From Scyliorhinus canicula (taxonomy: Eukaryota): 64,000 nucleotides of DNA. A program made the position numbers and the translations under genes. Below the pieces are notes generated by a model. The model was given only the letters and a program-made list of their open reading frames with translations. It searched no databases and was not told the DNA's origin. This document shows positions 54,830-62,600 of the stretch, piece by piece. The DNA is taken from NCBI RefSeq assembly GCF_902713615.1, contig NW_024055498.1, positions 124,001 to 188,000 of the forward strand, written 5' to 3'. Positions within the stretch are counted from its first letter, which is position 1; every line of letters starts with the position of its first letter.

Positions 54830-55465
54830 CTATTTCTATAGGTTCCTCATTCGGACTGGATAAGGGAATCTGTAACCTGCATCTGCAAAGCTGTCTGCAG
54901 CTCAGTCAGGATTCATGCAGCTTCCACTCTTCATCAATCAAACACATTTTCAATGGGAATTAAATGGACTTTTTCATTTTTTAAACTTTTATTCACATTA
55001 TAAATGTCAGAAAGCATCATTCAATCAACAACTTTTCTGTAAAATTCTATAAAATGATGTTGAAACGTGTGTCTGACTGGTTTTTCATTATTACTGGCAT
55101 TTGATTAACATATTTGTATTGTTGACCAATTTTTTAAAAGTTGACTCTTCCTTGTATTAAGGTTGCCGTCCGCCCCCTGCACTGAACCCTTAGTTCCCCC
55201 TTGTAATTAGAACGTTTTTGTTTCCTACGATGATGACAGATAAAAAGTATTTGTTTTGTTTCTGTTATTTCCTTATTTCAATTATAATTTCCCCTTTATC
55301 TGTTTCTCATTGGGGCATGTTTACTTTCACTCATCTCTTCCTATCTACACACCTACAGAAATATCTGCTTTGTAAACTCCACGAGTCCAGACTCAAATTC
55401 CCATTTACATTTAATTCAGGCTGTTGTTTCTCAAGTCGATGATCCCGACCACTGTGATCCCACTC

Positions 55466-56064
55466 CTTTTTTAAAATTGTTTTCTTTTTATTACTTTATC
55501 AGAGTTACAAAGCCAGATCTCAGAGTGTGGACAGGGGCAAACCCCTAATCCAGCTCCTTGCCTGCTCCAAAAACCAATTCAAATTGAATCCAATTCATGG
55601 TCCCCACGAGAGCGACATCCCAGATCCAGGCACTAGAAGGATGAGGGGGGATCTTATTGTAACTTACATGATACTGTGAGGTCTGGATAGAGAGGACGCG
55701 GAGAGGATGTTTCCACTTGTAGGAAAACTAGAAGCAGAGGACACCATCTCAGGCTAAAGGACGATCCTTTAAAACAGAGATGAGGAGGAATTTCTTCAGC
55801 CAGAGGGTGATTAATCTGTAGAACTCATTGCTGTGAAGGCTAAATCACGGAGTGTCTTTAAGACAGAGATAGATAGGTTATTGATTAATAAGGGGATCAG
55901 GAGTTATGGGGAGAAGGCAGGAGAATGGGGATGAGAAAAATATCAGCCATGATTGAATGGCGGAGCAGACTCAATGGGCCGAGTGGCCTAATTCTGCTCC
56001 GATGTCTTGTGGGCTTATTACACCTGACCTCACGCTGACCTTAGCCAAAAGACCGAGAGGCGAT
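55466..56064 (-). mobile_element. U2 snRNA-derived retroposon (candidate U2-SINE) interrupted by a CR1 fragment
   Basis: Starts ATCGCCTCTCGGTCTTTTGGCTAAGGTCA (U2 5' end); body has TTTTTGGAGCAGG..TGGATTAGGGGTTTGCCCCTGTCCAC (U2 Sm/SLIII region); A-rich tail. TSD GTGATCCCACTC at 55454-55465 and GTGATTCCACTC at 56065-56076. Confidence 0.8.
55636..56017 (+). mobile_element. 5'-truncated CR1 inserted in the U2-derived element
   Basis: RRMRGDLIVTY-like start and a CR1 3' UTR nearly identical to 60600-60965. Confidence 0.85.
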
Positions 56065-56264
56065 GTGATTCCACTCTTAACACCACTTGAAAGATCCAGA
56101 GTGAGGAATCATTACCTGAAAAGAGGATTGAGCTCAGGAATGATTTTAAAACAGTTGATTGGGAAGCAACAAACTTGAGTTAAATGGACAGAAATAGTGA
56201 ACACTTTTTTAGGTGAGGATGGTTTCTGGCTCCTGGAGGACAAACAGAAGGATGGTGCCGAGTG

Positions 56265-56471
56265 AGTGTTGGTGTCCATGGCTGGTGGCTGCCGTCTCCT
56301 CTGAACGGTTCACTGGTGTTGGTGTCCATGGCTGGTAGCTGCTGCCGCCTCTGAACGGTTCACTGGTGTTGGTGTCCATGGCTGGTGGCTGCCGTCTCCT
56401 CTGAACGGTTCACTGGTGTCGGTGTCCATGGCTGGTGGCTGCTGCCGCCTCCTCTGAACGGTTCACTGGTG
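56265..56471. repeat. ~50-bp tandem repeat, 4 units
   Basis: GGTGTTGGTGTCCATGGCTGGTGGCTGCCGTCTCCTCTGAACGGTTCACT repeated. Confidence 0.92.
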
Positions 56472-57338
56472 TGAGCCAGATTTCGATGTTTGGATGAAGC
56501 CAATCACTTTGAAATCTCCTTGTTCTTGAGAGCCATTGTTAATTGTTGCACACAGTTGGGTAACGACTGGCTCATAATGTCCAATTGTATAAGTGTTAAA
56601 AATGTCTTCTTTCAGGGGCTATGCTCAAGACATTGTCCTTGGCTGAGATAACAGGTCTGTCCCGTGTTTGTCAGTCAGCAAGTTGACATAGAAGCTTTCT
56701 TCAGAATACAGAGGGAGAGCTATTTCTGGAATATGCCATAAATTTCTGATGATTTTACATAAGTCGATTAAACTGTGATTTCTTACAATCTATTACTTGG
56801 ATTGAACTTGTCTCCATTCCTGGTCTGAGGGGATTTCTGGACAAGATGGGAGATGGGAAGGATAACATTCTGGACTCTCAATTCTCCACCAATTCCCATT
56901 CCCTTTCTGGGCGATAACAGAGGCTTCACTGTGTGTAATGTACAAATCAGTGAGAATTGGCAGCAAGGGCTGATCAGCACTTTCTAATCGGAAATGTTAA
57001 TCAGTGGAACAAATCAGACACTGAATTGCAGATTTTGTACCAAAGGTCATTTTGTGATTGAAGGAAAAGTCCAGAACATTGTTGTGAACTAATTTCCAAT
57101 GAGAGTTTCTGAATTATGGGGAAAGATCACAGACAGCGTTTCCAGAATTCTGCAGCCCCGAGAACACAATCAGCTATAGATCCAGAATAATTAATTCCAG
57201 CTCAGTTAAACAGTGGATTAACATTAGCAGAAACAAACCCCATCTGTCAGAACAAATGTTATTCGGGCCTGGTTGTCAGTAACAGCGGCAATAACAGCAG
57301 AATCCAATCCCTGAGTCACTTGTGACGTCGCTGGTGTT

Positions 57339-58232
57339 TCAGCAATTGGGATGAATCAATGAACCCCTTCCCACACTTGGGCAGGTGAACAGCCTCTCCC
57401 CAGTGTGAACCCGTTCATGTCTCAGCAGTTGGAATGAATCAATGAACCCCTTCCCACACTCGGGGCAGGTGAACGGCCTCTCCCCAGTGTGAACCCGTTC
57501 ATGTCTCAGCAGTTGGGATGAATCAGTGAATCCCTTCCCACATTCGGAGCAGGTGAATGGCCTTTCCCCAGTGTGAACCTGTTCATGTCTCAGCAACTGG
57601 CATGAATCAGTGAATCCCTTCCCACACTCTGAGCAGGTGAACGGCCTCTCCCCACTGTGAACCCGCTGGTGTAATGCTAGGTTAGATGACTGAGTGAATC
57701 CCCTCCCACACAAAGAGCAGGCGAATGGTCGCTCCCCTCTGTGAATTCGTTGGTGTACGATGAAGCTGCTAGAATGCCTGAAGCTCTTTCCACAGTCAGT
57801 GCAGCTGAATGGTTTCTCCCCAGTGTGAACTCGCTGGTGTTTCTGCAGCGTGGATGAAAGCCTAAAGCTCATTCCACAGTCAGTGCAGCTGAATGGTTTC
57901 TCCCCAGTGTGAATTCGCTGGTGTGACACTAGGTTGGATGAGTTAATGAATCCCTTCCCACACACAGAGCAGGTGAATGGCCTCTCCCCAGTGTGAACCC
58001 GCTTGTGTAATGCTAAGTGTGTTGAGCGAGCGAATCCCTTCCCGCATACAGAGCAGGTGAATGGCCTCTCCCCAGTATGAAGCCGCTGGTGTATTGCTAA
58101 GTTTGATGACCGAGTGAATCCCTTCCCACACACGGAGCAGGTGAACGGCCTGTCCCCACTGTGAGTGCGTCGATGAGTTACCAGCTGGGAGGGGAAAGTG
58201 AATACCTCCCCACATTTCCACAGTTTCTCCAT
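57339..58232 (-). CDS. Tandem C2H2 zinc-finger protein, 9 intact fingers (MEKLWKC)
   Basis: ATG at 58232. First finger has an in-frame deletion (KCGEVF); 9 canonical fingers follow; the last finger is frameshifted. Confidence 0.8.
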   Translation of the reverse strand: MEKLWKCGEVFTFPSQLVTHRRTHSGDRPFTCSVCGKGFTRSSNLAIHQRLHTGERPFTCSVCGKGFARSTHLALHKRVHTGERPFTCSVCGKGFINSSNLVSHQRIHTGEKPFSCTDCGMSFRLSSTLQKHQRVHTGEKPFSCTDCGKSFRHSSSFIVHQRIHRGERPFACSLCGRGFTQSSNLALHQRVHSGERPFTCSECGKGFTDSCQLLRHEQVHTGERPFTCSECGKGFTDSSQLLRHERVHTGERPFTCPECGKGFIDSFQLLRHERVHTGERLFTCPSVGRGSLIHPNC

Positions 58233-58929
58233 GGTGCCAGTGTCCTTGTGTCTCTCCACACAGAACAAGTGTACAGTTTCTTGCCAGAGCAATTAAGTTA
58301 TATTTTTTCAAAGCTGTGTAAACGCTACAGTCAGTTTTCAGGAACACATATTCGGGTGTTCGTGTTTCTCGGTGTTCTTCCAGTCAAACTGATATTTTAA
58401 ATATTTTTCCAAATGAGAACCTTCTTCTTTCCACATTCAGAAGTTGATGATATTCAGGTCCTGAAGAATAGAGTTATTCTGTTGAATGTTGATCTGATGT
58501 TTTGTTTGAGATTTCCGATGGCAAATTCTCCTCACCTTCTAATATCCTGTAAAAGGTGTTACAAAAGTCATCACTGTCAGTTCAGGATAGAAATTCTAAT
58601 GAGACAATTTTAATTTCTCTGGCATATTTTTTCCTCTCTTGTTCCCCCAAAGTAGTAAATCCCCGCCCCACACACTCTCCCTCCTCCTTGGGCTGAAATC
58701 CAAACCCATCTCACCATCTTCTCCGTTACTTTCCTCAACTCCAAGTTTTCTCCCTCTCTCTCCTCTGCCTGAGTTCAGTTCTCCAAAACACCCTGAAAAA
58801 GGAAGTTCTGTCAGTCCCAGATAGACATTCAGAAGAGACCAAAATTCTTCTTGGTTTCAGTTTGCTGCGTGCACATCTTTTCCCCTTCTCACCCTGTATA
58901 GGAGTTTCCAGAATCCATGTTAGTCAATG

Positions 58930-60034: not shown

Positions 60035-60339
60035 ATGAAGCCTACCGATTGGCCCACCGAGCCTGCACCGACCCACTTAAGCCCTCACTCCACCCTATCC
60101 CCATCACCCAATAGCCCCACCTATCCTTTTTGGTCACTGAGGGCAATTTATCATGGCAAGGGTAATCCACCTCACCTGCATGTCTTTGGACTGTGGGAGG
60201 AAACCTGAGCACCCAGGGAAAACTCACACAGACACAGGGAGAACGTGCAGACTCCGCTTAGTGACCCAGCGGGGAATCGATCCTGGGACCCTGGCGCTGT
60301 GAAGCCACAGTGCTATCCACTTGTGCTACTGTGCTGCCC
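60035..60339 (-). mobile_element. HE1-like V-SINE
   Basis: Head 'gggcagcacagtagcacaagtgg...ggatcgattccc' and V-domain. Confidence 0.85.
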
Positions 60340-62600
60340 AAGGAAGGCAAATGCAATGTTAACACTCATGTCGAGAGGGCTAGAATACAAAAGCAGGGCT
60401 GTACTTCTGAGGCTGTATAGGCTCTGGTCAGGTAACGTTTGGAGTTTTGGGCCCCGTATCAAAGGAACAATGTGCCAGCCTTGGAAAAGGGTCCATAGGA
60501 GGTTCACAAGAATGATCCCTGGAATGAAGAACTTGTCGTATGAGGACTCTGGGTCTGCACTTGTTGAGAGTTCAGAAGGGTGGGGGGGGGGGGAGATTTT
60601 ACTGAAACGTACAGGATACTGTGAGTCCTGGATAGAGTGGATGTGGAGAGGATGTTTCCACTTGCAGGAAAAACTAGAACCAGAGGGCTCAATCTCAGAC
60701 TAAAGGTACCATTCTTGAAAACAGAGATTTAGGAATTTCTTCAGCCAGAGGGTGGTGAATTTGTGGCACTTTGCCGCAGAAAGCTGTGGAGGACAAATCA
60801 CTGAGTGTCTTTAAGACAGAGATAGATAGATTCTTGATTAATAAGGGGATCAGGTGTTCTGGGGAGAAGGCAGAAGAATGGGGATGAAAAAATATCAGCC
60901 ATGATTGAATGGTAGAGCAGACTCTATGGGGCGAGTGGCCTAATTCTGCTCCTATATCTTATGGTGTTAGATCCTGAGTTTTTATTTTCTACAATAACCT
61001 TTGATATGACAACCTATCAAATGCCTTCTGGAAATCTAAGGACAGTACATTCACCTGTTCCCTTTTAGCCACAGTACACGTGACTCCATCAAATAACTCT
61101 GATAAATTGGGTAAATATGATTTCCCTTTCACAAAACCATAATCTGCCTGATTACCTTGAATTTTCCTAACATGTTCCCTATGACAGATGTTTTGCTGAC
61201 TGGCCTGTCGTTTCCAGCTATCTGCCCCCCTCCCATTGTGAATAAAGGAGTTACTTTTGTTATTTTCCAATTTAATGGATTCCTCCCTGTATCGAGCAAA
61301 TTTTGAACAATGAACCGGGTGCATCAACTCTCTCATTAGTTGCTTCTTTCAAGATCTTATGGTGAAGTCGACCCGAATCCAGGGTTTTGTCAGCCTGCAG
61401 ACTCAAACATTGCTCATTAACACTTCCCTGGTGATTGTAATTTATTGAAACTCTATCTGTCTTTATATTTCTAGCCAGCTTTCTCTGGCACTCTAATTAT
61501 TCCGGTCTTATTATTATTTTTGTGTTTATATTTTATTCTTTATATTCTGCCTAATGTTCTGACCTGAAATCTGCCTTTGCGCTGTTACGTGCTTTTTAAA
61601 AAACATTGCTATGTCTTTAACTTTTTTAGTTAAAGACAGATGCTGTGTCCTCACCATGGCATTTTCCATTCTTACGAGAATGTATCTATTCTGTGTATAC
61701 TGAAATATCCCGTTCAATGTCTGCTACTGAATCTCTATTGACCTGACAATTTGAAAGTTCATTTTAGCTAGCTCTGCATTGATGCCCAAGTAATTGCTTT
61801 TATTTAATCTTAACTTACTCGTCTTGGATTCAATCTTCTTCCCCTCAAACTGCATGTCAAATTCAATCATTTTATAATCACTGTTACCTGGGGACGCCTT
61901 CACCGTGAGGTTATCAATTAATCCTTGTTCCACAATACCGAGTCTGGTATAACCTTTTTTTTAAATTTAGAGGACACAATTTTTTTTTTTCCAATTAAGG
62001 GGCGATTTAGCGTGGCCAATCCACCTAATCTGCACATCTTTTGGGTTGTGGGGGTGAAACCCACGCAGACATGGGGAGAATGTGCAAACTCCACATGGAC
62101 AGTGACCCAAGGCCAGGATTCGAACCTGGGTCCTTAGCGCCGCAGTCCCAGTGCTATCCACTGCACCACATGTCACATATCTGGTATAACCTGACCTCTG
62201 GTTGGCTCCAAAATGTGCTGATTGTAGAAACTATTGCAACTATTCTGTGAAATCCTCACCTATGCTACCTTCGACCATCTGATTTTTCGAGTCTATAAGT
62301 TGACTAAAATCCTCCTTGATTATCGCTGTACCTTTTCTGACAAGCTCCCATTATCTCTTCCTTTACACTCTGTCCTACTGTGTCGTTATAATTAGGAGGC
62401 TTGCACACCACTCCCAGAAGTAAATTCTTGCCTTTATCATTTTTTATCTCAATTCAAACCACTCCTACATCCTGGTTTCCTGAGCTTAGGTCATCCCTGT
62501 CTAATGTGCCAACAGCATCAATAATTAACAGAGCCGCTCTTCCACCTTTTCCTAGATTTCTAGCCTTCCTAAATTTCACATACAGATCCTTTAGTTTTGT
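60340..62600. mobile_element. CR1 fragments (60340-60968 +; 60990-62600 -) with a SINE at 61953-62175
   Basis: KANAML..SRGLEYKS, GFVKGKS..NL..LDFQKAFD and GNSDYKMIEF motifs. Confidence 0.8.

Follow-up and report, generated by a model that had tools for sequence, protein, structure and literature searches.

Structure of the U2-derived element and its nested insertion

The window analysed here is a 64,000-nucleotide stretch of the Scyliorhinus canicula genome (contig NW_024055498.1, positions 124,001 to 188,000 of the forward strand; assembly GCF_902713615.1), and the positions below are those of the window. On the minus strand, the segment 56064-55466 starts with ATCGCCTCTCGG, which corresponds to U2 snRNA nucleotide (nt) 1, and ends in an A-rich tail. 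The segment is flanked by a 12-bp target-site duplication with one mismatch, GAGTGGAATCAC at 56076-56065 and GAGTGGGATCAC at 55465-55454, of which the 5' copy may extend to AAGAGTGGAATCAC at 56078. The probability of 11 or more matches out of 12 at a fixed position is 37/4^12, about 2e-6.

The 5' part of the element (56017-56064, minus strand) corresponds to nt 1-48 of the consensus of subfamily A, described below. It contains U2 nt 1-27 (stem-loop I), followed by GAGCGTG-type remnants of a first U2 segment and then by a second U2-like segment (AGGTCAGGTGTAAT). The 3' part (55490-55631, minus strand) corresponds to consensus nt 49-190, and contains the stem-loop IIb-like region, a 16-nt insert-duplication (GAATTGG...), the Sm-like site GGTTTTTGG, the stem-loop III-like hairpin GGGGTTTGCCCC, and a remnant of the 5' half of stem-loop IV ending in GATAAAGTAAT. 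The A-rich tail of this copy (AAAAAGAAAACAATTTTAAAAAAG) lies at 55489-55466, minus strand, and the tails differ from copy to copy.

The two parts are separated by a 5'-truncated, CR1-like LINE 3' fragment of 381 bp (55636-56016, plus strand), which lies antisense to the SINE and is flanked by a 4-bp duplication (TAAT at 56020-56017 and TAGT at 55635-55632). The removal of 55632-56016, that is, the LINE fragment plus its 4-bp duplication, gave a 190-nt sequence that aligned without any gap to the family consensus, with 182/190 identical positions (95.8%). A second copy of the LINE fragment, 84% identical, is present in the window at 60590-60964. The frameshifted translation of the fragment carries RRNFFSQRVINL-type motifs, whereas a Pfam search of the ORF remnant found no family. 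The assignment to CR1, which was also made in the original prediction, is plausible, but it rests on motifs of chicken CR1 ORF2 and not on a library match.

The locus lies about 1.3 kb downstream of the stop codon of a C2H2 zinc-finger ORF on the same strand. At least 14 further paralogues of the locus are present, and all 14 paralogous loci that were retrieved carry an insert of similar length at the same site, indicating that the locus was duplicated segmentally after the LINE insertion.

The original prediction described a remodelled U2-derived retroelement with a target-site duplication and an A-rich tail, interrupted by a LINE fragment, and this observation was confirmed. The predicted rejoined junction was slightly off; by the consensus, the junction is GGTGTAAT|GCCTGG. 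The altered Sm site, the GGGGT-TT-GCCCC hairpin and the loss of the stem-loop IIa region were all real, but they belong to the whole family, and only 8 substitutions are specific to this locus. The hairpin change is smaller than proposed, because the U2 of this genome reads GGGGC-TT-GCTCC at this position. The hairpin thus differs by two one-sided changes that each keep pairing, not by a compensatory pair. Likewise, the tail that had been described as non-U2 is partly U2-derived: its conserved part up to GTAAT aligns with the 5' half of U2 stem-loop IV, and one of the sampled copies (L055) is intermediate in this region.

Descent of the element from U2 snRNA

The family consensus aligned to the U2 of the same genome with 136 identical of 159 aligned pairs (z about 18 against shuffles), indicating that U2 descent is far beyond chance. 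With the Rfam U2 model (RF00004), uninterrupted copies gave E = 3e-4 to 6e-7, and copies scored 32-48 bits, in contrast to 162-192 bits for true U2 genes. The interrupted window copy scored only 19.5 bits (E = 0.66), below the gathering threshold of 46 bits. Other Rfam hits near the element (Prion_pknot, snoRNAs and others) were all below threshold and are explained by tandem repeats or low complexity.

The scores of subfamily A copies were 36-37 bits, whereas some subfamily B1 copies just reached the gathering score (46-48 bits). Stem-loop I, an Sm-like site and a stem-loop III-like hairpin are kept in the consensus, and the first and the core hairpin of the last were also predicted by folding. 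However, the z of the fold was only -2.5, compared to -4.8 for true U2, and this adds little. These features raise the possibility, also offered in the original prediction, of a variant U2 snRNA locus, intact or decayed, that is transcribed in place to make a variant spliceosomal RNA. Conversely, the copies carry target-site duplications and A-rich tails, have unrelated 5' flanks and diverge from the consensus. The branch-point recognition sequence GUAGUA reads GUAAUG in subfamily A, the window copy is broken by the 381-bp insertion, and no copy with the U2 proximal promoter motif was found in the searches described below. A variant snRNA locus is thus not supported for this copy, and this explanation is very unlikely.

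A dispersed family with independent insertions

A first search with the 3' part of the element returned 1,895 candidates, and independent chromosomal copies were 92-96% identical to it. In those copies, the head and the body are contiguous. Diagnostic words were then counted in the 4.2-Gb genome at up to 3 mismatches. A body 41-mer had 1,504 matches, the subfamily A head junction 485, the subfamily B junction 455, and the subfamily A 3' end 937, whereas the reversed-pattern control gave 0 in every case. These results indicate that the same derived structure recurs at least about 1,500 times.

Full-length copies begin with ATCGCTTCTCGG, which is U2 nt 1, and consist of about 190 nt of conserved, non-coding core followed by a short, variable A-rich tail. 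By an automatic test, 23 of 28 full-length copies have a target-site duplication. Seventeen duplications of 10-19 bp, counting that of the window, have a median length of 14 bp and show T at positions -3 to -1 and A at +1, +2 and +4, although the A at +1 and +2 is partly forced by how duplications next to an A-tail are delimited. The flanks of 44 copies share no repeat at a fixed position, and 16 of 44 sampled copies lack an intact head, reflecting frequent 5' truncation. The sample is biased, since the copies labelled L016-L030 were the best BLAST hits and those labelled L051-L080 were required to carry an exact 41-mer.

The family also occurs in sequencing runs labelled with a second, closely related organism, in which a contig covers the 5' flank of one sampled copy (L025) and runs into the element.

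The start at U2 nt 1, the A-rich tail and the target-site duplication would also be expected for an ordinary processed pseudogene of canonical U2 that decayed and rearranged in place, and such U2 retrocopies are known in mammals (Garcia-Perez 2007, as cited in PMC4494074). However, nearly all of the differences from U2 are shared by hundreds to about 1,500 independent copies, and only 8 of 190 positions are specific to this locus. The family matches are not assembly duplicates of one locus, because their flanks and duplications differ. The finding of only a few copies with private differences, which had been named beforehand as the result that would overturn the SINE reading, was clearly not obtained. 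The processed-pseudogene explanation is thus refuted by the shared derived characters. The inference in the original prediction that the source transcript was already a derived U2 variant, that is, that the element belongs to an snRNA-derived SINE family, is supported.

Subfamilies and inferred re-addition of the U2 head

Several subfamilies were found, which differ between stem-loop I and stem-loop IIb. Subfamily B3 (U2 nt 1-27 joined to about nt 60 onward) is an internally deleted U2. Subfamilies B1 (U2 nt 1-38 or 1-45, then element nt 12 onward) and A (U2 nt 1 to about 36, then an element starting near U2 nt 23) carry a second U2 5' segment in front of a 5'-truncated element, which explains the duplicated motif noticed in the original prediction. 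A subfamily B2 and odd forms (copies L055 and L062) were also distinguished. The designation of subfamily B as old and A as young was rejected, since the within-subfamily divergence in the body is similar (4.2% and 3.5%) and the two consensuses differ at only 4 of 133 body positions.

The presence of head re-addition junctions is also compatible with recurrent chimeras, made each time by template switching between U2 snRNA and another abundant RNA during LINE reverse transcription, as with U6-L1 chimeras. However, the junction points are identical across hundreds of copies (485 and 455 matches to the junction words), whereas independent switches would scatter. Moreover, the body is itself U2-derived, not LINE or mRNA sequence, and the 3' end shows no excess over the body. 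This explanation is therefore very unlikely.

Searches for a source locus, a LINE partner and a transcript

The U2-type promoter motif GCTGTAAAA, placed 55-70 nt before the head word, found 22 true U2 genes but no subfamily A head. Looser versions for the A, B1 and B3 heads gave 1, 0 and 2 matches, respectively, none with the rest of the promoter motif or at the right distance. These results indicate that no source locus with a U2-type promoter was detected by these searches.

The 3' end word had fewer matches (937) than the body word (1,504), indicating that no larger family shares the tail, and no LINE-derived tail or specific LINE partner was identified. The L1 ORF1 domain PF02994 is present in the genome. 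In the assembled contigs of runs presumed to be RNA, pieces of the element were found, some of them at the ends of contigs up to 5.2 kb long, which shows neither a discrete transcript nor its absence.

The absence of a detectable outside promoter could suggest a conventional polymerase III SINE, in which a cryptic internal promoter in the U2-derived head makes every full-length copy a potential source. In the head, TGGCTAAGATG matches 9 of 11 positions of the A-box consensus TRGCNNAGTGG, and the repeated success of newly headed subfamilies suggests that the head does something useful. In contrast, the A-box-like match is weak and no convincing B box was seen. In addition, T4 at nt 14-17 and T5 at the Sm-like site (about nt 107-111) should stop polymerase III long before the shared 3' end near nt 190-196, an argument also used against polymerase III for crocodilian SINEU (Kojima 2015, PMC4494074). 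As judged from the sequence, this explanation is unlikely.

Discussion

The element is, with high confidence, one retroposed copy, belonging to subfamily A, of a roughly 200-bp non-autonomous retroposon family whose whole body descends from U2 snRNA, an snRNA-derived SINE of the SINEU kind. The analysis directly establishes the history of the locus, in which the SINE inserted with a 12-14 bp target-site duplication, the 5'-truncated CR1-like LINE inserted into it at consensus nt 48, and the whole locus was then copied by segmental duplication. It likewise establishes the family properties, namely at least about 1,500 copies, precise 5' ends at U2 nt 1 with frequent 5' truncation, short A-rich tails, duplications at T-rich|A-rich sites without a shared target repeat, and several subfamilies. 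The mechanism, in contrast, is inferred. Copies would have been made by target-primed reverse transcription by an L1-like LINE, inferred from target sites only, whose endonuclease prefers TT|AAAA-like sites and which primes on the A-rich 3' end. In this view, B3 is the oldest design, and B1 and A arose when a fresh U2 5' segment (nt 1 to about 36-45) was joined in front of a 5'-truncated element, most likely by the reverse transcriptase switching template onto U2 snRNA. Source transcripts were probably made by RNA polymerase II from a few master loci with an outside promoter, since the T4 and T5 runs would stop polymerase III. The window copy itself is regarded as an inert relic with no likely function.

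The closest known relative is crocodilian SINEU, especially SINEU-3 (Kojima 2015, Genome Biol Evol 7:1702, PMC4494074). SINEU-3 is a short non-coding retroposon that is essentially an internally deleted U2 snRNA (5' 32 bp, then a middle 83 bp, then about 40 bp at the 3' end), with a poly(A) tail, about 1,600 copies, no recognisable internal promoter and oligo-T runs inside. Subfamily B3 has the same design. SINEU-3 inserts almost only into one Mariner transposon and is attributed to site-specific Tx1-Mar LINEs. The present family is dispersed in a cartilaginous fish, at T-rich|A-rich sites with no shared target, its deletion end-points differ, and its 3' end still aligns with U2 stem-loop IV. 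The Tx1-Mar partner and the preference for the Mariner-N4 target are properties of the crocodilian families, not of the SINEU class. The features of the class itself, a 5' region derived from U1 or U2 snRNA and beginning at or near snRNA nt 1, a length under 500 bp without coding sequence, the 3' polyA tail stated for all groups of SINEU (PMC4494074), many copies sharing one derived structure, and insertion by LINE machinery as seen from target-site duplications and 5' truncation, were all found here. An origin independent of crocodilian SINEU is inferred from the different deletion points and hosts.

SINEU-1 and SINEU-2 of crocodilians, described in the same paper, show the same recurrent addition of a new U1 or U2 5' fragment in front of an existing element, creating subfamilies. 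Their bodies are not U2-derived and some carry U1 heads, whereas head and body are both U2-derived in the copies examined here. The monomeric Alu ancestors (FLAM/FRAM) and L1-mobilised Alu likewise represent an internally deleted small-RNA gene turned into a retroposon, with an A-rich tail instead of a LINE-derived tail, target-site duplications of about 14 bp at TT|AAAA-like sites and a master-gene style succession of subfamilies. However, Alu keeps the polymerase III internal promoter of 7SL RNA, whereas U2 genes are polymerase II genes with outside promoters, which leaves the transcription of the present family unexplained. Ordinary U2 retropseudogenes and snRNA-L1 chimeras in mammals also combine snRNA sequence with a poly(A) tract and a target-site duplication made by L1, but they are one-off copies of the canonical snRNA, whereas here a derived sequence has been copied more than a thousand times.

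A more speculative possibility, which is considered unlikely on present evidence, is that the first 27-45 nt of U2 form a functional module for the retroposon and not a passive relic. This module could act as an internal element that recruits the snRNA transcription machinery, or could give the RNA a cap, stability or a location that favours capture by the LINE protein. This would explain why freshly added U2 heads repeatedly founded successful subfamilies here, why the same occurred in crocodilians (independently, by inference), and why no promoter-bearing master locus can be found.

In the papers searched, snRNA-derived SINEs are described only from crocodilians, and full-text searches found no paper linking such elements to cartilaginous fishes, although the family may already be catalogued in Repbase or Dfam. 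Some copies reach the Rfam U2 threshold and can thus inflate U2 gene counts in automatic annotation, and dated, target-site-duplicated insertions of this kind are useful presence/absence markers for phylogeny. The family provides a second system for asking how a retroposon derived from a polymerase II snRNA gene is transcribed, and its non-site-specific, L1-like integration would make it easier to study than the crocodilian families, which are tied to one target transposon. A second family in a distant vertebrate lineage, probably of independent origin and with the same head re-addition behaviour, would show that the snRNA-to-SINE route recurs.

Structure of the interrupted element and its nested insertion

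Read on the minus strand, the sequence from position 56064 begins ATCGCCTCTCGGTCTTTTGGCTAAGG, which is U2 snRNA from its first nucleotide. After 48 nt the U2-like sequence stops, whereas it resumes at 55631 and runs to GATAAAGTAAT, which ends at 55490 and is followed by a 24-nt A-rich tail (55489-55466). The element is bracketed by GAGTGGAATCAC (56076-56065) and GAGTGGGATCAC (55465-55454), and the probability of 11 or more matches out of 12 at a fixed position is about 2e-6. The Rfam U2 model detected the interrupted copy only weakly (19.5 bits, E = 0.66). These results confirm the observation in the original prediction, that a remodelled U2-derived retroelement with a target-site duplication and an A-rich tail lies at this position.

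The 3' part of the element (55466-55636, minus strand) gave 1,895 first-look candidates in the 4.22-Gb genome, and the 40 candidates that were scored were 92-100% identical. Fourteen of these (loci L002-L015) carry an insert of similar length at the same site, and are paralogues of the whole 3.1-kb locus around the SINE, with identities of 93-97%. They lie on contigs C428, C284, C61, C78, C77, C618, C359, C45, C262 (twice), C632, C107, C35, and C352 of the genome assembly, which are mostly small and unplaced. The locus is a segmentally duplicated block with at least 14 further copies, probably an amplified zinc-finger gene cluster. An ORF of 317 aa with about 10 C2H2 zinc fingers is located at 57339-58292 on the minus strand, and the 84-bp finger units were detected by TRF as 10 tandem copies (57329-58164). 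The SINE lies about 1.3 kb downstream of the stop codon of this ORF on the same strand, possibly in a 3' UTR. A 50-bp tandem repeat with 4.1 copies (91% matching) at 56266-56472 causes the spurious below-threshold Rfam hits to Prion_pknot.

In contrast, the head and the body are contiguous in the other loci (L016-L030), which are on chromosome-scale contigs. When 55632-56016 was cut out of the window copy, the remaining 190 nt aligned to the family consensus without a single gap, with 182 identical positions (95.8%). The insert therefore corresponds to 55636-56016, with a 4-bp duplication (TAAT and TAGT). On the plus strand, its frameshifted translation shows motifs such as RRNFFSQRVINL and GDLI, which resemble the C-terminal part of chicken CR1 ORF2. 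Pfam has no model for that region, and the designation "CR1-like" thus denotes a resemblance in motifs only. A second copy of the same LINE end lies at 60590-60964, 84% identical to the nested fragment over 375 bp. It belongs to a longer remnant (60245-60964, plus strand) with an ORF remnant of 152 aa that has no Pfam match. Another copy of the SINE family, at locus L077 (937-1622), is split by a nested insertion of about 490 bp near consensus nt 57-60, a different site from that in the window copy.

Size of the family

The copies in the genome were counted by word searches allowing 3 mismatches, and the reversed-pattern control found nothing in any case. A 41-mer of the body gave 1,504 matches, the subfamily A head junction gave 485, the subfamily B junction gave 455, and the subfamily A 3' end gave 937. 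These are lower bounds, since diverged copies fall outside 3 mismatches. For subfamily A, the head-junction word has about half as many matches as the 3' end word, which fits the 5' truncation typical of LINE-made copies, although CpG decay in the head word contributes too.

Descent from U2 snRNA and subfamily structure

The true U2 snRNA genes of this genome score 162-192 bits on the Rfam model. They lie in tandem arrays on contigs C26 (12.68-13.13 Mb, spaced about 970 bp apart) and C20 (74.9-75.06 Mb, spaced about 3.2-4 kb apart), and also occur on C5, C15, and C18. Of these, 22 genes carry the proximal promoter motif GCTGTAAAA(A/G)(A/G)GGGA about 45 nt upstream of the start, whereas the C26 genes did not match that exact pattern.

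The subfamily A consensus aligned to the U2 of this genome over almost its whole length, with 136 identical of 159 aligned pairs (z about 18). The regions that are kept are nt 1-27 (stem-loop I, identical), the stem-loop IIb region, the Sm-like site, the stem-loop III core hairpin, and a remnant of the 5' half of stem-loop IV. Conversely, stem-loop IIa and the 3' half of stem-loop IV are lost, and the GUAGUA branch-point recognition sequence reads GUAAUG. A 16-nt insert-duplication before the Sm-like site and 4 nt after GGAGCAGG are added. The original prediction described the hairpin GGGGT-TT-GCCCC as altered from GGAGC-TT-GCTCC with pairing kept. The U2 of this genome has GGGGC-TT-GCTCC, and the hairpin of the SINE therefore differs by two one-sided changes. 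Uninterrupted copies score 32-48 bits on the Rfam U2 model, and two copies of subfamily B1 just pass the 46-bit threshold.

Four subfamilies were distinguished. In B3 (for example, loci L071, L072, and L065), U2 nt 1-27 is joined directly to about nt 60, giving an internally deleted U2. In B1 (L052, L053, and L074; L076, L078, and two further places in the genome), U2 nt 1-38 or 1-45, including GTGTAGTA, is followed by the B3 sequence from its nt 12 (GCCTTTTGGCTCAG...). B2 (L059, L060, L064, and L073) is a mutated B1-like form. Subfamily A, which comprises the window copy and most of the sampled copies, consists of U2 nt 1-27, then GAGCGTGAG, and then a second U2-like stretch, AGGTCAGGTGTAATGCCTG (roughly U2 nt 23-42). 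The duplicated AGGTCA.GTG motif pointed out in the original prediction is therefore interpreted as the scar of a new U2 5' segment placed in front of a 5'-truncated element.

Two odd copies may be early branches of the family. In L055 (C1:72774977), the 3' half is closer to canonical U2 (GTCCACTC, GCGCATTGAC), whereas L062 (C1:205558200) looks like an un-headed precursor of subfamily A with a further truncated U2 in front. In the body, the A and B consensuses differ at only 4 of 133 positions, and copies diverge from their own consensus by 3.5% (A) and 4.2% (B), in a sample that is biased towards conserved copies.

Integration of the copies

Of 28 full-length copies, 23 have a target-site duplication by an automatic test. 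The 17 duplications of 10-19 bp, counting that of the window copy, have a median length of 14 bp. Among these 17, T was found in 8, 10, and 7 at positions -3, -2, and -1, respectively, and A was found in 13, 12, and 10 at positions +1, +2, and +4, respectively. The enrichment of A is partly forced by the adjoining A-tail, whereas the enrichment of T is not. The flanks share only scattered unrelated repeats, with no fixed target. For L025, the downstream flank (1721-1757) enters a very abundant repeat, at which the summed contig depth is up to about 1.1 million in the public sequencing run X7, against at most about 140,000 on the SINE. At L018 and L023 (C7:9846415 on the plus strand and 9856779 on the minus strand), the same SINE insertion, with the same duplication and flanks, occurs twice in inverted orientation about 10 kb apart, which is a local inverted duplication.

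The tails are short and differ between copies, and the 3' end shows no excess of copies over the body, indicating that no more abundant family, such as a LINE, shares it. An L1 ORF1-type domain is present in the genome, although no specific partner LINE emerged from these analyses. Whereas the duplications, the tails, and the absence of a fixed target are direct results of the analysis, the mechanism, poly(A)-primed target-primed reverse transcription by an L1-like LINE, is inferred from them.

Transcription of the family

The element contains a T4 run and a T5 run, which would stop polymerase III about 80-180 nt before the shared 3' end, and full-length copies start exactly at U2 nt 1. This points to polymerase II transcription from an outside snRNA-type promoter at a few master loci. 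However, searches combining the promoter motif with the head, which recovered 22 true U2 genes, found no such locus for A, B1, or B3, and the mode of transcription thus remains a matter of inference.

In public runs, examined as assembled contigs, pieces of the element occur in runs presumed to be RNA from at least two studies and in a second, closely related organism, although some of those pieces lie at the ends of contigs up to 5.2 kb long. In run X7, which is from the second organism, one contig covers the 5' flank of L025 with 2 differences and runs 26 nt into the element, suggesting, but not proving, a shared insertion.

Relation to crocodilian SINEU

SINEU was defined as U1- or U2-headed, poly(A)-tailed SINEs, "found only from crocodilians" (Kojima, 2015, PMC4494074). 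SINEU-3 is an internally deleted U2 with about 1,600 copies. The SINEU families are all attributed to site-specific Tx1-Mar LINEs, with their transcription left unexplained. Later reviews cite only the crocodilian work, and full-text searches of the literature, which did not extend to the entries of Repbase and Dfam, found nothing on such elements in cartilaginous fishes.

The present family conforms to the structural criteria of the class and repeats both of its themes, internal deletion and head re-addition, whereas it differs in host, in deletion points, and in having no target specificity. As far as the searchable literature shows, it is an addition to the SINEU kind. These results support the interpretation in the original prediction, that the source transcript was already a derived U2 variant, and of the two readings offered there, an snRNA-derived SINE family or a variant snRNA locus, they support the SINE family. 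The window copy is an inert, interrupted, and later duplicated member of this U2-derived SINE family.
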